From Adineta vaga (taxonomy: Eukaryota > Animalia > Rotifera), in the NCBI GenBank assembly GCA_021613535.1, contig CP075496.1, positions 14,136,001-14,200,000 on the forward strand: a DNA stretch of 64,000 nucleotides. Reading direction: 5' to 3'. This document shows positions 1,428 to 20,674 of this stretch, in pieces. The notes under the pieces were generated by a model. That model was not told the DNA's origin, searched no databases, and saw only the letters and a list, made by a program, of their open reading frames with translations. A program made the position numbers and the translations under genes. How positions within the stretch are numbered: the first letter of the stretch is position 1; the number at the start of each line of letters is the position of its first letter.

Positions 1428-3561
1428 TTAAGTAACACGAAGACTTTGAAGATGTGCTTGAGTTGAATGTAATGCCTGTTCATGTAATTGTTTCTGTTCT
1501 TCTTGTTTAAAAGCAATTTTCGTTGCTTTTTTAATAATTCGTCGATCCTAAATGAAAGGATTTGAATTTTCAAAAAGAAAAATAAATTTTCGTTTTTTTA
1601 CTTTTCGAATTTCTTTCACTGCGTGTTTTCTCGCACGTCGTTCTTCACTTGTTTCTCCTTTTTTTCTTTCAAATATCATTGATTTTGTATTATTATCTTC
1701 TTCATCATCATCATCATCATCTTCTTCGTCTTCTTCTTCTTCTTGATTGGTATTACGTTGTTCTTTTATTGAGATTTTATTATTATCAGCTAATGGTAAA
1801 CCAGTTTTTCTCGATAAACGAATTCTATTTGTTGGGATTTGTGTAATTAGTTTCGGATGATTGTAAAGATTTGAATATGTTGAAAGAATACTTTGACAAT
1901 CCCATTTATCATCAGCTTTTTCATCATCTTGAAGCGTTAGAGTTGTTACTGCTTCCGGTTCATTTAATAATCGTCGTGCTAATCGTTTCGTTTTTTCAAT
2001 TGCGATTTGTTCAATTTTTTCATCACTACAACAAATTCATAAGATAATATCACAGTATGACATGAAAAGATTCTAGGACAAATCCTGTGGAGTATAATTA
2101 GCTCAACAGAATGTCAGTTGGAAGTTTTGTATGAAAAGAACATAACGATTCGAACTAACATTGCACGTTTAACAATCTTTTGTTTGAATAGCGTCACATC
2201 TCCCAATTATATTCTGTTCTACGTATAACTATTTCGAAAAGAAATAGTAAAGATCAATGCGTACATTTGTATAAGAAAGAAAGAAAGAAAGAGAAAATAT
2301 TGTTGCATTCATTAGGTAGCTTAACTTCAAATGAGTTAGAAAAGCATTTGAATCTTACGTTTGCATTTGTTGTTTTTCGAAGTGTTGAATCGTTTGTTTA
2401 ACTAAATCATCTTCAATCGACGCACCTTCTTGATTAATTTGTTGTGAATCTAATGCTCCGATTTCTTCATCATCATATTCATCAAACACTTTATCAAAAT
2501 GATCATCAATATTTTGTAAACCTTGATTTCTTCTTATAACTGATGATGTCATTGAATAATTTGTATATTTTGTTTTTGATGTTTGTCTATCATCATCATT
2601 ATGTGAATAATTTGATTCCATATCTGCATCATGATCATCGTCATCATCGTCATTGAGAAAACGTCTTAATGCAAGTGGAATTGGTTTATTTGTTTTGGGA
2701 ACGAAGAGTGGTGGAATAGTTGTTGGAAGATTTTCTTGAGCAATTTCATCTCTATTGAAGAAAAGGATTTGATGAGGAAAAAGATAAATCAATTTGATTT
2801 ACTCGAATTCGTCACATTCGTTTTCATCAAGTGGTTGAATTCCATTTGCTTTTAACATAAAATCATCATCAAGAGTATTTTCGCCATCTTCATAATCGTA
2901 TTCATCATCATCAAGTGCAGCAATAACATCTGGATCCCAATGAATTTTTGGATCTAAAATCAACGAATTGATTGATTAATAAAAGATGTTTTTCTTTTCA
3001 AGAAATCTTTACCAGAATCTGGTGCTGCAAGATTTAACATTCCAATTTCATTTGTTGTTTTACTTTCGAATACAGTTGATGGAAGATTAAAACGTGACAT
3101 TAACTAAAGTAAAAAACTCCTTTTTCTCTCAATCTTTCTTGTCATTAAATTATTCATACATGATCATTATCTTTATCATCATCTTCATCTTCATCTTCAT
3201 CTTCATCTTCGTATTCATCGTCATCATCATCATCTTCTTCTTCAATTTCATTTGTTTTTTTATCAACATGAACAGAATATTCTTCAGGTGGTGCACATGG
3301 ATCACGTAAATGTTGTAAATAATCATAATCATCATCATATTCGATTCCATATTTAAGTTGTTCAGCTTTTCTTTTGTCAGTCTAAATAAATCTTTTCGAA
3401 ATATAATAGAAATGATTAAAAACGAAGAAATTTACATTAAGTGGAACAAGTACATGTTCACCAGCAGTATCATCAGCAATCAATGGATCATGTTGACTAC
3501 GATGCACTAATTGAAATGTTATTGCCTTTTTTTTATCAATAAATTTTCGACGTTGAGGCAT
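1428..3561 (-). CDS. LTV1: LTV1 40S ribosome biogenesis factor (multi-exon)
   Basis: Starts MPQRRKFIDKKKAITFQLVHRSQHDPL. Contains YSMTSSVIRRNQGL and WDCQSILSTYSNLYNHP, and ends RRIIKKATKIAFKQEEQKQ...SLRVT* (TAA at 1430-1428). These match LTV1 family motifs. Confidence 0.92.
2109..2264 (-). ncRNA. Candidate intronic box H/ACA snoRNA-like RNA in LTV1 intron
   Basis: Lies in an unusually long intron (2026-2358). Hairpin 1 has the stem ACUAUUUC/GAAAUAGU with UACG/CGUA at its base; ANANNA hinge at ~2215-2207; hairpin 2 closed by UUGGGAG/CUUCCAA; ACA at 2114-2112. Confidence 0.35.
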
Positions 3562-4587: not shown

Positions 4588-7500
4588 TGATTTCATCTTG
4601 GCATTCTTTCTTTTTTTTTCACTTATATATTCTTGTCATTCTGATATTAGGTGAAGTAACAAACAATTTTACCTTTCGTTTTTTTCTCTGTTTTTTTTTA
4701 TTACTAAAACATATTTCTCTTTTACTATTCTACACGTGTTGACAGACTTGTATAGACACATAAATATAACAAGAAATCCTTTTTTTTCTCTGATAACGAT
4801 TAAGTATTCATAATTTACATTTACAGTTTCTTAAACTACTGACATTCAACAAACGATTTTACAATCCTTGTTTTCGATTCCTATAAGTTATTCAAGCTGA
4901 AATTACGATCATCTTCAGATAGATTTTATTATGAGTATAATTATTCAAAGGTTATGGACGATAATACAATTGATGATCTTGGTAAAACACGAATTCAATA
5001 CAGAAGAATTTGAACTATGTCATACTTTTTTTAAATTTTAGGTAACTATAAATATGGATGTTGTATTATCAAATGATTCGACTATCACTAGTTCAAGTAT
5101 TTCATTCTTATTTTTACTAATTTTTTGTTACTTCTCCGTAATCATTTCATAAATAGGCATTTCAGAGACTCTGAGCACAGACATCACATATACTAGCACT
5201 GATACATTTAGTACTATTGAAACCACAACTGAAGAACTTACTACTACTGAATTGCCTACTACTACTGAATTGCCAACTACTACTGAATTGCCAACTACTA
5301 CTGAATTGCCTACTACTACTGAATTGCCAACTACTACTGAATTGCCAACTACTACGATGAAACCTAGTAAATCATTCATTCCTTTTCCTATATAAGTTTC
5401 TTAATTCTTTTCGAAATTTCCTTTTATAGTTGATCTATGTGCTAATCGAACAATTCAAGATCTTACTGTAGTAAAACGATCACCAGACATGTTTACAGTA
5501 CTTATTGCATACAAATGTAATTTTACAAATCAATATAATTTTACAATATCATATAATGACACATCAGCTAACTGCAATGAACCTGATGAACTTATGAATC
5601 TTACTGGAAATATCACTTTAAATGTGAGTTGTAGTAACATTCAAGGTAAAGCTGGTCGCAACTTTGCATTTGAACTACAACGAGAGTCAATAGAAAGTGG
5701 AACATTCATTGATCGACCGATCAATATAACGCTTGAACCATTACATCTCAATACAACTATTCATAATGTGACAGTTGATAATAGTTTAACATCAGCATCA
5801 ATTATCGTACGAAATTGTTCGAAAATAGCCGATCTCAAATATCTTGTTGTGCGATGTAATAGTTCCGATATGTCAAATATTTCACTTGGAACAGATTGCA
5901 TACACACCTGCTTAAATCTGGAACCGGGTTCCGAATACAATGCATCATTAGTTCGATTACCAATTCCAATAGCTGATAGATACGACAATTTTACAGAAGA
6001 AAATCTACCCATACACGTTACTATAGGTAAAAAGATTATTGATGATACTAATTTGATCTAAAAATTTTACTATCTTCTTATTCTGTATTATTAATTACAT
6101 TAGACCTTGATAAAGCAACGAACTTAAGTGGTATGTCAAGAGAAAATGATTCTGCCGTACTTAGGTTTACATGTCCACGTGGAAATTTCGATGAGATTAT
6201 TGTCAATTGTACTGCAAGATAATAAGTGTCTAATCAAAAGCGTCTATTTGAAAACACAAACCAATACTTGTTCTAATCCCGCTTCACTGTCATTACACAA
6301 CATGACCGCAAAAGTGGGATATAAATGTCAAATTCTCACAAAAAAATTCGGATTTTGCGATGTTCTGTCAAACATAACTGAAATTCAAACAGGTAAGATC
6401 AAAGATATTTCCATAACTGAACTTAATAGAATTGTAATTCTTATCTGTTTAGAACCACAAAGTATTACGTACAAATTACTTAGTACGTCTAACGAAAGTT
6501 TAATGAATTTTATTGTTAATCCGAATAATGATTTCGAGAAGATTGATTTAACTTGTACGGTAATTGATGATCATTCAAATGATTGTAAAGATCTCACAAA
6601 AATAACTGAAAATTGCACAACCAGTTTACAATTGAGGGGAACTCGTGGATGTGATTATGATTGTTTCTTTACAACAACAAAAGTAAACTATACGAACATT
6701 ATTTCAGAACATTTCAATTATTCGATTTGTGAGTTTTCTTTTCTTCGTTTTGATCATCAAGTTGCAAAAAAATTAATTTTATATGGATTTAGATCCTCCA
6801 GAACCAGAGATCACAAAATTTAAATCAGGAGCTCGATGGATATCTATTGATTGGATGATAAATGAGATAGCAAATATTCAATCATTCAATATTATCAGTA
6901 ACGATACGATTGAGAATCGAAATGAAACAACATTCTTAACGAATCGAACAAATTTTTCACATACATATAGAACGAGCATCATGCCATTTAGAAGGCAAGT
7001 AAAGTTGTATTCTTTATATTAACTCATCGATCTATTTATCCTATTTTAGTTATATACTTTCTATTGAACTTATTTCTAATCAGAATGTTTCATCAAACAA
7101 TATTACAATAAAAACATTACAAGAATGTAAATACTTTATTTCATGTTTTATATTCTATAGAATTTCTTCTTCTTATTTTTTTTTGACAGCGCCTCCTAAA
7201 CCAAATCCTTCAGATATAGAATCAAAACTTGTTCCAAAAACAAATCATCCATCATCATCGTATGATCAGTTTGTCATTGAGATAGATCCATCATTATTTT
7301 CTGATGATTATGGTCCTATAGAAAGATATTTCATCTATGTTCGGAAAGGTAGAAAATTGTTTTTCATCTTTTCAATTTCACATCTGTATTGATAAAAAAT
7401 ATAGATCGAACTCAAAATTCCTCGGAAATAGTTTTGAATGGAACATATGATGAAGCAAAACATAATCAATCGATTGATTATTTAGCCGCTGCATTGTCAA

Positions 7501-9908: not shown

Positions 9909-11056
9909 CAATCATATAAAATGTAAACTAAATTTTTTATTTTTTCGAAATTACTTGTTTTTCCGTTTTTTTATATAATAATTGTGTTATTTAAAATAAT
10001 GATTGATCTAATAAAATAACAAAGATAAATGTTAGAAAAATTTTCTCTTGAGCATTTATGAGACATATTTATCTTTACAATATTCGTATATTAACTATGT
10101 GAAATGATTTCTTTTGAAGCAAAACATGTATCTGCCTCGCTTGCTGAATCTGTCCATTGACTGAAAATCGAAAATAATGATAACAAACAATTTTATCAAC
10201 TTTGTTTAATTTTGATCCATTGAAAAGTATTTATTTACATCAATCATTTCTTCGTCCACAGAATTCTCATAAATTTTTCTTGTTGATAGGAATTGTTTTT
10301 GACAAAAGTCAACTGAAGAAGAAAATCAAATATTTTTATTCATATTATACACGCACAAAGAATGCAAATCAGATTTACGTTTGTATACAAGAAATCTCAC
10401 TTTAATTTAAATGGTGTTTCCAATTGTACATGTATTAGTACTTACAAAACGAATACTTTCATAAGTATAATAAATAAACTCATTTCTTCTAATAACAATA
10501 TCCCGTACTTCATCTTTGTCGTGATCATTAACAAGGTGTAAAGTTGAATGTGATAAAGTATCGATTGAAAGTATTGTTTATAACAGAAAAGTTTTATTTA
10601 TATTCCTTGAAAACTATCAATACTATCTGCAATCCGAAATTCTCTATATCAATAATGAAATTAAAAAAACAACAAGAGTAAACGGTAGAAGAACACCGCT
10701 GAGGTCATATGGCTTTTGTTTTCTAAGACAGATAATGTGATTTTTATGTTGCTAGCATTACTCTTATCAAACATTTGATAACAATAAGGATGAGAAAAAG
10801 TATTCCTATTAGATATTCATATATTTCAAATGCAATGAAAATGTACAAATAAAACAGACAATTTTTTTACATTTGCACAAGAAAATATTCAATTATAACA
10901 ACAAAGTTCTATGCAATACAAAATGAACATAACTATTGGTATGAACAAACAGTGATGACCAGAAAAAAATCTATTCAATCTATATGAGATTTACAAATTG
11001 ATAGATGAGTTGTTTTTCCACAATTTGTTTGCTGTATTTGTTTAATCATGTGTTTC

Positions 11057-11539
11057 CTATAGAATATTCCTATATGTTTGTCGACGAGCGTGCTCTACTT
11101 TTTCTTCTTCGTCTTGTGCCCGAGTCAGCATACGATTCAAACGCGCATTCCATACGAGATAGAAACGATTAAAATAGAATGTACCTAAAACAAAATCAAC
11201 AGGCAATTCTGGTATTAAAATAGGATGGCCCCATGCTATCAATTTAAAAGTAACAGGATTAATTGATATAAATGTTGTTTCACATCGTCGGTAAATATGA
11301 GTAGTTGGAACGATATCATTGAGTGAGGAACCGGGCAGATGTCGAGGTGGTACGTCGTCGATCTCTAGTCCAAGACGTTGTCGCATCGATTCACTAATCA
11401 ACGAACATGTATTCCCTGGCAGCCAAAATACATTTGATATTTGAACACGATGGACATCGGACAAGCTAATAAAACCACTTTCAGCATTTCTCTGATCTCT
11501 TGCGTTACTGATGATTAAATTAAAATCGATGGATTGCAT
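11057..11539 (-). CDS. Intronless bacterial-type clan AA (retropepsin-fold) protease homolog, catalytic DTG replaced by LPG (copy 1)
   Basis: IISNARDQRNAESGFISLSDVHRVQISNVFWLPGNTCSLISESMRQRLGL resembles the bacterial aspartyl-protease N-terminal pattern (N.xDxxxA.xGxI...V.....NVLVDTGA...L...LGL). C-terminal DFVLG matches the retropepsin hydrophobic-LG motif. Confidence 0.6.
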   Translation of the reverse strand: MQSIDFNLIISNARDQRNAESGFISLSDVHRVQISNVFWLPGNTCSLISESMRQRLGLEIDDVPPRHLPGSSLNDIVPTTHIYRRCETTFISINPVTFKLIAWGHPILIPELPVDFVLGTFYFNRFYLVWNARLNRMLTRAQDEEEKVEHARRQTYRNIL

Positions 11540-12048
11540 TTATTCGAGGTATTAAATTCAAATGACGTCATAAATCTGAAAGAAAAGAAAGAGATTTGTA
11601 TACGTATAAGTAGGTATATATGGAAATAATCTTATGTTTAATAGAGTCTTTTTCAAGCTAGAACAGTAGTGGCAGCTTCACACTGATACACCCTTCCATT
11701 GTCAGCCACTCACCCTTGAAGAACGTAGCTGACATCATATGCTTTTATTTGTTTTCTAAAAATAATGTTATTTTTTATGTTCCTATTCTCACTTTTATCA
11801 AATATCAAATAGAAGTAGAGATGAAAAATAAAACTATTTCACCTGATATTCAATTATTTCAAATAAAATGAAAATATTCAATTACAACAACACGTTTTGA
11901 TACAATACAAATTGAACATAATTATTGGTATGAACAAACAATAATGACCAGAAAAAACGATTTAATCGAAAAAATGTACTTAATGTATTTGAGATTTACA
12001 AATTGATAGATGAATTGTTTTTCCACTATTTGTTTAATCATGTGCTTT

Positions 12049-12531
12049 CTATAAAATACTCCTATATGTTTGTCGACGAGCGTGCTCTGCTTTTTCTTCT
12101 TCGTCTTGTGCCCGAGTCAGCATACGATTCAAACGTGCATTCCATACAAGATTGAAATCATCAAAATACAATGTGCCTAAAACGAAATCAACAGGCAATT
12201 CGGGAACTAAAAGCGGAAATTCAAATGATAGCATTTTAAAGGTGACAGGATCAATTGATAAATATATATCTTTACATCTTCGGTAAACATGAGTAGTTGG
12301 AATGATATCATTGAGCGCAGAACCAGGCTGATCTCGAGGTAATATTTCGTCGACCTCTAGTCCAAGATGTTGTCGCATCGATTCACTAATCAACGAGCCT
12401 GTATTCCCTGGCAGCCAAAATACATTTGATATTTGAACACGATGGACATCAGATGAGCTGATAGAACCATTTTTAGCATTTGTATGTTCTTTTGCGTTAC
12501 TGATGATTAAATTAAAATCGACGGATTGCAT
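12049..12531 (-). CDS. Intronless bacterial-type clan AA protease homolog, catalytic DTG replaced by LPG (copy 2)
   Basis: 160 aa paralog of 11057-11539 with an intact frame of the same length. Confidence 0.6.
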   Translation of the reverse strand: MQSVDFNLIISNAKEHTNAKNGSISSSDVHRVQISNVFWLPGNTGSLISESMRQHLGLEVDEILPRDQPGSALNDIIPTTHVYRRCKDIYLSIDPVTFKMLSFEFPLLVPELPVDFVLGTLYFDDFNLVWNARLNRMLTRAQDEEEKAEHARRQTYRSIL

Positions 12532-13814
12532 TTATTCGAGGTATTAAATTCAAATGACGTCACAAATCTGAAAGAAAAGAAATAGATTTGTATATGTATA
12601 AGTAGGTATATATGGAAGTATTCCTATCTGGCTATGTTTTCTTTTTTTTCCTATAAAGTGCAGCGATCTAAACACACGTGATTACATAAGTATATTCAAC
12701 TTATTCGATATTTTATCTCTGCAAATAAAATCAAAAGTAAGAATAGTCTTTGATTCTTTATAAGTTAGCTTTTCTGTTTACCATATCGATACACATGTTT
12801 GAATGTTGAAAGCTTTTAAAGTGTAATACATAAGTCTTTTGATAAAATATCTGACTAAATGAATGACAGTGCTTTTTGCATATATCTTTGATATCTTGAG
12901 ATCGTCCTAAAGATATCTGATTATATGATAATCGTACGGAAGGATATAATAAATAATATCAAACAATATGCAAAACGGAAAATTCGTTCGGTGAAATCAC
13001 TTTATGATTTTACAATGTTTTCTAGAAACTCTATATATAAAATTCTGTGAAATATTTTGTCTTATCAATTTGCTCTTCAAAAACTATGCTGTCATGACTC
13101 ATGTAGCTGGTTTTTTATTTGATTTTAAGTTAATCAAATTAGAAAAATCATAGCAACTTAAAACGAAATCTGATTATGTATAGATTCAAAGAAAAATATG
13201 AAGGATAAAGATTTTCTATTTTCACTTATCTTGTTGAATGATCGGAAATTTCATTATATAATTTATGTGAAAAGAAAAGCATTGTTCCATCATTCAAAAT
13301 AAAATCGAAAAGAATTTCAAAAAAAATAAATCACATAGTGCATTGAACATGAAATTTCGTATGAATTGAATATATTGACATTGAAATGTTGATTAATATT
13401 AATAAATCCGAACAGGAATTTAAAAAACCGAATCAGTTCAATTAATAAACGAAATTTTTCGTATAAAGGAAACAATCTTTTTGAATTTAAATAAAAATGA
13501 ATAATATTTTAATTGATAAATACATGCTTTGAACTAAAGAATAAATAATCGAAGAGTATCACGGGTTAACTGATAATTTAAATGAATAGAATATCTAAAA
13601 TTAAGAAAATTCGAACTTATTCAAATAAGAATTATTGATCCTGTTCAATATGTAATCAAGAAACTAATCTAAAAATAAAAGATAAGAGTTATGAGCTAAA
13701 AAAAAGTGTTGTAAATGAACAATACCTATTATCAATGAGTCTTTTTGCGATTTTTTTTATGAAAAATTACACATGTATGATTCTATTTCGTTTTCTAATT
13801 GAAATTCGTAGATT

Positions 13815-14254
13815 ATGGCTGGTGTTAAAACAAACGAAGAAAAATGGTTGGAGATAGTGTGTGTTTGACGAAGAAATCAGATGCAGAAAATAAAAAGAAG
13901 GGTTTATTAGCTGCTACTGATGTAAATATGATTAATTTAACAATTAAAATCGATACAGACTGTACAGAATTAGCATTGACTACAGCACTTGTTGAGATGT
14001 TAAAGTTGGAATATGTTGATACAGTGGAAGTATCATCTAGTACCGACAACAATGTTCCAATAAACCGTTATGGACCGTTGGTCATTTTCTGGAAGGAGTT
14101 GATCTATGATTGTAATGCTTATTGTATGCCATCATTAGATGCACCATTATTAGGTTTAAAACCATTACTTCAATTCAAACCAGATTTTGAATGGGCCAAT
14201 AATACTGTAAAACTCAGTATTTTCTCATTTCCTCAAAAACAATGGAGGAAGTAA
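13815..14254 (+). CDS. Intronless bacterial-type clan AA aspartic protease homolog (DTD motif)
   Basis: IKIDTDCTELALTTALVEMLKL...Y...CNAYCMPSLDAPLLGLKPL fits the DTG...LGL...PLLG.PL layout of prokaryotic clan AA proteases. The ATG at 13815 is out of frame by one GT unit at ~13860; an in-frame ATG lies at 13844. Confidence 0.65.
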
Positions 14255-15655
14255 AATGATACTTACCATATGTGCAAGTCGTCTCGATGTTGATATCGAT
14301 TCCGTTGCTCAAAGAATTGTTAAAGTTGCACCAAGCTTAACACAAATATAATTTGAAAAAAAGAAAAAAAAAGAAGTTAAATTGTTATAACATTCTCTGT
14401 TTATTACAAATAAAAAATCTGACAAAAAATTATTACGTGTAAAGATAGAAGTCGACATAAAAAACAACTTGTAAAGGAAATACAAATACAACAACATTGA
14501 ACTTAGTTTATGACAAAAAAGTGATTGAATGAATCATTGACTTGATTTTTATGGTTGTTTATATTCATTACAATGGTGTTGAACATTAACCAATCGATAT
14601 TTTTCTTTGTAACTTACCTATTAGCTAGAGATCGTTGGTTTACATATTTTTATTGGAATAGTTGTTAGCATACAACTCGTAAGAAACGAAGAAAACGAAA
14701 TTTCATGCGGATAGAATCAAATCAAATTAAGAAAAAATCTTGGATCAATGAATACCGTTAGAATTACTATAGTCATCATAGGTTCAATTGTGATATGTTG
14801 AAACTCTGGTTGGTGTAGTAAAATATTTTTTAAGATACAATCTACTCATATATTGTTCGACAAAGAAATTTTTAATTGGGACGAATTTAACTATGTAAAT
14901 GAGACAATTTAATCTATTATTTTATTTAAAATACGAACTAACATAAATCAATAGTTTGTAATATGAAAAATGTCTTTTTGTCTGGATAAATATACATAAA
15001 TCATTTCTACACGAGTTTGTGTATCATTTTTTTAATTATCAGTATCAAATAACAAAGTTGGTAGCAATTTAATATTCATATTCTGTCAACAGTTATTAGA
15101 AAACAGAAATCTCACTTATGGAATTACTATTGTGACACTGGAATCATTGTCTTTGAATGTAATTAATCATAGCGTAACAACAGATGACGTCTGAATGTCA
15201 ACATCGAAAACTGTATAGGTTGCTCACAAATAGAAATTTTCTATTATCTTTTTATGTAGTGCAACGACTACGAAACGTCGAATATCTTATTTGCAGAACA
15301 TTATAGATTTACTCTCAACAATCTAAAATCAGGTTTCATAGTACATGATAATGCAGTTACCACTTCTTTTATAACAAAATTATAATAATTCTACATGCCT
15401 ATTCCATGTATTCTTGATGTTTCTTTTCGATAAAAAAAAGATATTATTCAAGTCTTTTACTCGAAAAATGAAAATCTATATGTAGATAGATTATTAATGA
15501 ATACTTTTTTATGCTTGCTGAATGTTTCATTTTAATTTAACTATAAAAAAAAGAACTTTGAAGAAATCATCAAAGAAAAATATTCAAAACACATTCATAG
15601 AACATTTTCAATCGACTAGAGATATGTAATACATTTTAAGAATAAAACGAACTAT

Positions 15656-19764: not shown

Positions 19765-20674
19765 TTATTTGGCTGCTTTCTTTGGTGAGGCAGCTTTTTT
19801 TGGAGCTTTGGGTTTGGCAGCTTTCTTTGCAGCAGCTGGTTTTTTTGTTCCGGCAGCTTTGGGCTTTTTAGCGGTAGTTGCTTTTTTAACTTTAGGTTTT
19901 ACGACTTTTTTTGTTGCAGTTTTTTTTGCACCAGTTGATTTCGTTGCACCTGCTTTTTTGGCTTTAGCTAAAAGAGAAAAATCAAACAATAAAAACATTG
20001 AAAGGAAATTTTGATTGAAAATCTTTACCTTGCGTGGGTTTTTTTGTTACACCAGCAGCTTTTGGTTTTGAGCTTGATCGTGATTTTGTAGCTTTAGCTT
20101 TCTTTGGTTTAGCAGCAGCTGGAGCGGCAGCAGTAGCACCAGTTGATGGTGTTGCTGTTGTTGCAGCTGATGTTGTTGCAGAATTATTTGTATTTGCAGC
20201 AGTTGCGACTTTTTTGGCTGGTTTAGTTCCAGCGGATTTTGAACGAGCACGTTTCTTTGTGCCAGCTGCAGATGTTGTTGAGCCAGTTGGTTTTTTTGTT
20301 TTGGTTGATTTCTTTTTCGCTGGTTTTGCATCACCTGTTGCTAATTTAAATGAACCACTTGCACCATTACCTTTGGTTTGCTTGAAATATTTGGCTTTAA
20401 CACCATTTTTAAGAGCTAATTTAAGATGTTGATTTGCTTGAGCAGGATCAAGATGATAATTAGCCAAGACAAATTTAAGAATAGCAGCACGTGAACTTCC
20501 ACCACGATCATTTAAAGATTTTAATGCGGCTTTAATCATATCGGAATATTTTGGATGTGATGATCCTTGTGCTGATTTAGCTTTTGTTGGTTTTTTTGCG
20601 GCTTTTTTCGGTGATGCACTTGTATTGGCAACATTTTGAACGGATGAAACTGGAGCTGATGTACTTTCGGTCAT
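19765..20674 (-). CDS. Linker histone H1/H5-like, intron-containing
   Basis: Globular domain HPKYSDMIKAAL...RGGSSRAAILKF...KQTKGNGASGSFKL; K/A/P-rich tail with SPKK; intron 19968-20028; apparent 5'UTR introns upstream. Confidence 0.95.

Follow-up and report, generated by a model that had tools for sequence, protein, structure and literature searches.

In the bdelloid rotifer Adineta vaga, a chromosome piece of 64 kb (C4:14136001-14200000; hereafter, the window, in which positions are counted from its first letter) carries three short intronless genes whose products look like aspartyl proteases without a complete catalytic motif. This raises the question of what these genes are, where they come from, and whether they still act together. 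An initial annotation took them for a working three-gene system, in which the copy with the motif D-T-D would supply the catalytic aspartate, while the two copies with L-P-G would be dead heterodimer partners or inhibitors. The reading that we favour, with moderate confidence, is a two-gene module restricted to bdelloids, in which gene A, present in the window as the tandem copies A1 and A2, would encode a non-cleaving dimeric pseudoprotease with a binding or regulatory role, and gene B is represented here by a degraded remnant.

The three genes and their fold

Calling of open reading frames (ORFs) recovered all three exactly where the initial annotation had placed them, without introns, among intron-rich neighbours, and with no internal stop in any of them. 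The genes and the codons at their catalytic sites are as follows (aa, amino acids).

11057-11539, minus strand: gene A1, 160-aa retropepsin-fold pseudoprotease, intact ORF, the more derived of the tandem copies
12049-12531, minus strand: gene A2, 160-aa retropepsin-fold pseudoprotease, intact ORF, adjoining B and divergent from it
13844-14254, plus strand: B remnant, 136-codon ORF comprising the retropepsin domain only, its start being an internal out-of-frame ATG
11414-11422, minus strand: L-P-G codons of A1 at the site of the catalytic D-T/S-G, read from the sequence
12406-12414, minus strand: L-P-G codons of A2 at the same site
13952-13960, plus strand: D-T-D codons of B

The tandem copies have full frames of equal length, as had been reported, and align without gaps at 75% identity over 160 aa; A2 is the top genome match of the A-family profile. 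None of the three window genes carries the catalytic Asp-Thr/Ser-Gly: the L-P-G of both A copies and the D-T-D of B, where the Gly is lost, were read as initially described.

All three genes had been proposed to have the retropepsin fold, and the structural models agree. For A1, an AlphaFold2 (AF2) model based on 12 family members reached a predicted local distance difference test score (pLDDT) of 82. This model was compared exhaustively with 48,161 solved chains, and the nine best matches were retropepsins without exception (Z 8.5-6.7), including the proteases of Mason-Pfizer monkey virus (M-PMV, Z 8.5), equine infectious anaemia virus (EIAV, 8.2) and Rous sarcoma virus (RSV, 7.6), as well as Ddi1 (8.1) and APRc of Rickettsia (7.5). 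Foldseek with A ranked the retroviral-protease-like domains of Ddi1 first, and the language-model neighbours of A were aspartyl-protease clusters (0.92). The model of a full-length B orthologue has a pLDDT of 79, and the B-family model matches APRc and the proteases of the human immunodeficiency virus (HIV), xenotropic murine leukaemia virus-related virus (XMRV) and feline immunodeficiency virus (FIV) (E 1.7e-4 and weaker, probability 1.0). Both the A1 and the B-family models have the six-stranded double-psi-barrel-like fold of retropepsins, and the hydrophobic-hydrophobic-Gly motif near the C-terminus is present as V-L-G in A and L-L-G in B. Neither A nor B has an evident membrane or signal segment. 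Scans of A against Pfam and NCBIfam gave no match, and a sequence search of the PDB with the A profile found nothing relevant; the family scans being empty, the assignment of A to retropepsins comes solely from structure prediction.

Throughout the A family, D-T-G is replaced by L/I-P-G/K and similar tripeptides, and no copy examined has Asp at the first catalytic position, so that the description of the tandem copies as catalytically dead applies to every A gene examined. The family has two additional features, namely a conserved loop insertion of five residues (P-x-L-P-x-D-x-V-L-G-T) and a charged C-terminal helix. The strongly conserved A block lies just N-terminal to the hydrophobic-hydrophobic-Gly motif; the corresponding region of HIV-1 protease lines the substrate pockets. 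In A1, the insertion before V-L-G corresponds to residues 110-120 (window ~11180-11212, minus strand), with D115 invariant inside the block.

Head-to-head pairing and the unequal fates of A and B

Three A. vaga loci, namely C4 (the window), C5:10.67 Mb and C5:15.68 Mb, have genes A and B side by side and divergently transcribed. The same head-to-head arrangement is seen in A. ricciae and Rotaria socialis, on a contig labelled Didymodactylos carnosus, on a JGI metagenome contig that also bears a nuclear-receptor gene, and on a 563-kb ENA contig. The pairs fall into two old paralogous types, type 1 including the window and type 2 including C5:15.68 Mb and the Rotaria locus; therefore, whole pairs have been duplicated and kept together. 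Among the lineages examined, only bdelloid rotifers have the gene pair; all named close matches are bdelloid, and the bacterial relatives have no conserved neighbour gene. In a synteny comparison with A. ricciae, peroxiredoxin was not found near any A. vaga locus.

The two members of the pair differ in how well they have been preserved. A. vaga has four A genes, and each of them is intact. Across the family, the pairwise ratio of nonsynonymous to synonymous divergence (dN/dS) is 0.17-0.66, and 17 positions are invariant. With the Asp lost and the fold kept, A is, at the level of the family, a pseudoprotease under purifying selection. In the window, the dN/dS comparison of the tandem copies, which had been suggested as a check, gave dN 0.133 and dS 0.207; the ratio of 0.65 is below 1, but not significantly (p ~0.11). 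At the sites where the copies differ, the family majority residue is kept 13 times by A2 and four times by A1. This bears on the possibility that all three window genes are functionless, decaying leftovers, their frames still open since the duplication and the lesions are recent. Such a history would agree with a ratio indistinguishable from 1 and with the clear damage to B, described below. It is, however, very unlikely in our view: under 65 neutral substitutions, both A frames would stay open with a chance of 0.026, even with substitutions alone being counted; the A coding sequences (CDS) are free of indels, while the flanks have several; the family retains its invariant positions and its low dN/dS; and a 5' element is 96.7% identical between the duplication units and conserved across species. 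The duplication and this element are located as follows.

10881-11640, strand not assigned: tandem duplication unit 1, with direct repeats D1-D3; unit 2 is at ~11870-12640, with a period of ~990 bp
11560-11596, minus strand: conserved 5' element of A1, in which a polypyrimidine tract with a terminal CAG precedes the palindrome TGACGTCA, the latter ~25 nt upstream of the ATG; in A2, the element is at ~12552-12588, minus strand

Identity between the units is 96.7% over the 5' 60 nt, 86.5% over the CDS and 93% over the 3' 56 nt, and declines beyond ~11640. Conservation of the non-coding 5' element thus exceeds that of the coding sequence. The element is also conserved upstream of other type-1 A genes (loci L003, L010, L011 and L012), and its palindrome is exact in three A. 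vaga type-1 copies and one or two bases off in other species. In the 101-Mb genome, the element with at most two mismatches occurs only at A1 and A2. The polypyrimidine-CAG tract looks like a splice or trans-splice acceptor, and the palindrome resembles a cAMP response element (CRE). The B genes have a pyrimidine-rich stretch of their own, the terminal TAG of which is 3-4 nt upstream of the ancestral ATG (window 13795-13817, plus strand; L010 ~4985-5003; L011 ~1467-1485, minus strand). Conserved between A. vaga, A. ricciae and the contig labelled Didymodactylos, this stretch might be another acceptor-like site.

The initial annotation had taken B for the Asp-retaining copy of the family. Its 136-codon ORF is indeed open, but it is a secondary frame within what is left of a longer gene, and the other remains lie on both sides of it.

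13815-13868, plus strand: ancestral B start and a 17-codon dead-end frame; the upstream sequence and the ATG align with A. ricciae and the Didymodactylos-labelled contig, and the translation matches the orthologue N-terminus, then stops
14229-14346, plus strand: out-of-frame B tail with the last strand and helix of the KH domain, identified by translation against orthologues and by a separate B-profile match; the stop codon is within 14347-14385

The stretch 14347-14385 is A-rich. The best database match of window B is the A. vaga GenBank protein I4U23_021642. Intact B proteins have 211-222 aa and consist of a D-T-G retropepsin domain and a C-terminal domain of ~70 aa; window B is 62% identical to the 212-aa D-T-G orthologues. 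Judging from these orthologues, the ancestral B is a 212-aa D-T-G protease with a predicted C-terminal KH-like domain. Two type-2 B proteins pass the KH_1 (PF00013) cut-off of 21.5 bits, with 22.3 and 25.5 bits, and have G-P-D-G as the G-x-x-G loop typical of KH domains. The type-1 proteins have the loop G-S-D-D and no Pfam match, and the order of elements in their model, beta-alpha-alpha-beta-beta-alpha, is that of a type I KH domain. All that is left of the domain in the window copy is its last strand and helix, and these are out of frame.

Three lesions separate window B from the ancestral form. First, a 1-nt deletion downstream of the ancestral ATG (13815), which is still present together with the conserved sequence upstream of it, leads to a stop after 17 codons. 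Second, the Gly of the catalytic triad has become Asp, turning D-T-G into D-T-D. Third, ~32 codons of the KH domain have been deleted with a frameshift. The GenBank model of B (I4U23_021642, P0001, 158 aa) joins the ORF to the KH tail across a 31-nt GT..AG gap (14217-14247, plus strand). As 31 nt is far shorter than usual animal introns, this "intron" is doubtful, and the model bridging the frameshift is probably an annotation artefact.

The other B copies of A. vaga have fared no better. All four B-family traces are broken, and a B-profile search found no intact B anywhere in the assembly. The copy at C5:10.67 Mb has several frameshifts and the motif D-T-R, and that at C5:15.68 Mb is interrupted at codon 63 by an in-frame TAG. 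An intron was considered for the latter gene and dismissed: the gap between the matching halves, searched separately and unjoined, is the in-frame TAG. A fourth relic lies at G000:C2:13106868-13107194, plus strand (E 3e-10, four stops), and an A-profile search found no A-like gene on this chromosome, C2. Outside A. vaga, B on the 563-kb ENA contig is frameshifted, while its A partner is intact. Among the family representatives, D-T-G is the majority motif of B, with NTG, HTG, DAG, DTD and DTR also occurring.

These lesions bear directly on the three-gene system of the initial annotation, with the D-T-D copy as the Asp subunit and the L-P-G copies as its dead partners. One could cite for it the three open ORFs, the annotation of B as a gene in GenBank, the A/B pairing kept in every lineage examined, and a dN/dS of ~0.26 on the branch of the B remnant. 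However, window B lacks its ancestral start, the Gly of the triad and most of the KH domain; the other three A. vaga traces are broken as well; and a heterodimer with one Asp would not cut by the classical mechanism. We therefore regard such a system as unlikely at this locus today.

The two genes also differ at the nucleotide level. In the same species pairs, synonymous divergence is ~0.75 for A and 1.5-1.7 for the adjacent B, and G+C is 37-38% over the A genes and ~30% over B. These gaps could stem from codon bias, from constraint on A at the nucleotide level, or from a wrong contig label.

Relatives, origin and possible roles

The prokaryote-type affinity initially suggested for these genes is borne out by profile searches, in particular for B. 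Window B matches the NCBIfam family TIGR03698 at E 7.6e-6 with 26.2 bits, and the 212-aa orthologues at E 6e-12, the best bdelloid orthologue reaching 45.8 bits; all of these are below the curated cut-off of 57.35 bits. An exhaustive search of 1.84 billion representatives with the B profile gave 217 matches. The bdelloid set came first (E <= 1e-11), its named members being A. vaga, A. ricciae and Rotaria socialis. After a clear step in score, there followed ~100 proteins, mostly of 130-160 aa, with E 1e-10 to 1e-4. All ten tested non-bdelloid matches hit TIGR03698 (E 6e-10 to 2.5e-17); the nearest prokaryote-type relatives score 39-63 bits against it, with three of the ten above the cut-off. 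Most of the prokaryote-type matches carry no taxon label; a bacterial context was confirmed for two lineages, namely P0046, on a bacterial contig, and the Treponema/Spirochaetia relatives of P0095.

The A profile independently recovers the same prokaryote-type set, with up to 25 bits and ~42 matches at E<1e-3, while the maximum for 1,880 shuffled control sequences was 14.2 bits. In the joint alignment, A, B and the small prokaryote-type proteases are in register over the N-terminal strand, the insert, the second strand, the catalytic loop, where L-P-G of A stands over D-T-G, and the following helix. The shared N-terminal layout and C-terminal Gly motif noted initially are thus recovered, the Gly column being invariant. 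BLASTP gave no alignment between A and B, and the identity of the B family to its prokaryote-type relatives is ~21-29%. In unrooted trees, A forms one group (support 99) and B another (support 97). A single origin of A and B was not rejected by the approximately unbiased (AU) test (p 0.64), although long branches limit what the tree shows; put as a choice between one origin and two, the question was left undecided by this unrooted tree. As part of the best explanation, it seems somewhat probable that A and B both go back to a single kind of small retropepsin of the prokaryote type, similar to TIGR03698. Horizontal acquisition from prokaryotes, as initially proposed, would be the most economical reading of these similarities, yet it is unproven, given the low identity to the prokaryote-type relatives and a tree that cannot be rooted.

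Might the genes instead be domesticated proteases of long terminal repeat (LTR) retrotransposons, or relatives of DDI1? The Ddi1 domains top the Foldseek matches of A, and TIGR03698 also touches the proteases of retroelement-like ORFs of A. vaga at a similar score (29 bits). In these ORFs of 1151-1210 aa, which are probably LTR-retroelement pol genes, the protease segment reaches 24-29 bits (G000:C5:4617552-4617845, C5:4028199-4028486 and C3:734374-734658). When one such protease segment (L031, C3:734224-734808) was scored with our own profiles, it obtained 5.1 bits with the B profile and 3.5 bits with the A profile, whereas the small prokaryote-type proteins obtain 40-59 and 13-25 bits, respectively. 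The segments from the other two ORFs yielded no stop-free frame and did not enter this comparison. Moreover, the N-terminal strand-insert-strand is common to the small prokaryote-type proteins over their full length, and only two proteins longer than 400 aa occur among the top 150 B-profile matches, one of them from Planctomycetota. The match to Ddi1 is a structural one only. An origin from retroelements or DDI1 is extremely improbable; a grouping with LTR-element proteases, which the initial annotation had named as grounds for refuting its reading, is not what the scores of this one segment show.

How could an Asp-less retropepsin be of use? Retropepsins cut only as dimers, one Asp coming from each subunit. 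If A works by dimerising without cleavage, there are two options: A may form a peptide-binding, non-cleaving homodimer, or, where B is intact, it may form an inactive heterodimer with one Asp and thereby restrain B. A shared divergent promoter would keep A and B in step. Because all B copies of A. vaga are broken and all A copies are intact and constrained, the present role of A in this species must be independent of intact B, and the regulation of B by heterodimers may be the ancestral role of A.

A more far-reaching version can be formulated, in which the pair is a natural two-subunit retropepsin system: an active protease of bacterial derivation, joined to an RNA-binding KH domain, would be controlled by a linked Asp-less paralogue via one-Asp heterodimers, and A. 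vaga would be losing this system, having kept only the dead subunit, now with a role of its own. We put this forward as an unlikely extension.

Alternatively, the pair might be a toxin-antidote-like or conflict module, with B, an active protease with a nucleic-acid-binding domain, being harmful, and A being a dominant-negative antidote that lingers after the decay of B. Such a module would agree with the strict head-to-head linkage and the duplication of whole pairs, with the repeated independent decay of B next to an intact A (four A. vaga traces plus one on the 563-kb ENA contig), with the scattered loss of catalytic residues among B copies, and with the relaxed constraint on the window A copies suggested by their dN/dS of 0.65. 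However, purifying selection acts on A across species, including those loci at which B is broken; repeat analysis showed no mobile-element features at the loci; and drive is difficult to envisage in a lineage that is largely asexual. This makes a conflict module quite unlikely.

Our preferred reading, that of a bdelloid module with a non-cleaving A and, in the window, a degraded B, has to be weighed against several observations. If A needed B, the loss of all A. vaga B copies should have let A decay; if A is independent of B, it is hard to explain why the genes are strictly linked head to head in all lineages examined. The protease part of window B has a dN/dS of ~0.26 on its own branch; hence, the damage may be recent, or the remnant may still be in use. 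The A1/A2 ratio, not being significantly below 1, means that one or both window A copies may be under relaxed constraint. The profile-profile match between A and B (hhalign) is weak (E 0.0019, probability 14%), although in the correct register. The Didymodactylos label is uncertain, as dS between this contig and the A. vaga A genes is just 0.62-0.76. Finally, the evidence from RNA consists of partial word matches: of the words sampled from the region, 16-34% occur in sequencing runs that are presumably RNA, no more than a hint of transcription.

The genes around the three are ordinary animal genes. A receptor tyrosine phosphatase gene upstream and an ankyrin-repeat gene downstream are each split into many short ORFs, as expected, because they are intron-rich; a histone H1 gene is also among the intron-split animal genes flanking the region. 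An intronless histone H1-like ORF of 230 aa lies at 19982-20674, minus strand, and a lysine/alanine-rich ORF (19765-19998) is just downstream of it on the same strand. An Rfam search of the region gave a small nucleolar RNA (snoRNA) match at chance level only.

Comparison with known systems

The initial annotation suspected that the system was undescribed. Literature searches on bdelloid retropepsins, TIGR03698, bdelloid aspartic proteases with horizontal transfer, and the GenBank locus tag yielded no description of these genes; nor did a description of a retropepsin-KH fusion turn up, though this was not queried directly. The locus illustrates what may become of a probably foreign gene in bdelloids: duplication, fusion of one copy to a KH domain, catalytic loss in the other, and unequal decay. 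The KH domain fused to B is of the type modelled by Pfam as eukaryotic, and both genes have gained conserved 5' regions of eukaryotic style. For genome annotation, the locus provides an example of a gene model in which a short "intron" probably conceals a frameshift.

The closest counterparts are small TIGR03698 (clan_AA_DTGF) proteins of 136-145 aa from metagenomes and from Treponema/Spirochaetia, which, like A and B, have a single retropepsin domain and are the best non-bdelloid matches of both profiles. The TIGR03698-like prokaryotic genes differ in that they stand alone without a conserved partner, have no KH domain and mostly keep D-T-G. In particular, A differs from these proteins in the absence of Asp, in its 5-residue loop insertion and in its C-terminal helix.

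Among solved structures, the best match of the B-family model is APRc (RC1339) of Rickettsia conorii (PDB 5c9b/5c9f; E 1.7e-4, 22% identity), which is also the best solved-structure match of the B-family sequence profile (E 0.02) and one of the matches of the A model (Z 7.5). APRc is presented in its published account as a membrane-associated, active bacterial retropepsin-like protease (PMC4140852). By comparison, the sequence of A is that of an inactive protein, B has a KH-like domain, and neither shows an evident membrane or signal segment.

The Ddi1/DDI2 domain likewise has the retropepsin fold in a cellular rather than a viral protein; it works as a dimer and is accompanied by accessory domains, and its match to A is structural (Z 8.1). 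Unlike A, Ddi1 has kept the catalytic Asp, and it has ubiquitin-like domains; A and B group with the prokaryote-type proteins.

Retropepsins are the textbook case of enzymes that work only as symmetric dimers, and a natural pair of dead and live subunits, if true, would be a new mode of regulating this fold. Dead paralogues that pair with a dimerisation-dependent enzyme are known from cFLIP with caspase-8 (PMC7586951) and from prozyme with AdoMetDC (PMC5201418). Their folds are unrelated to those of A and intact B, so that the analogy would be one of mechanism only; if heterodimer control is true, A and B would be the clan AA counterpart of cFLIP and caspase-8.

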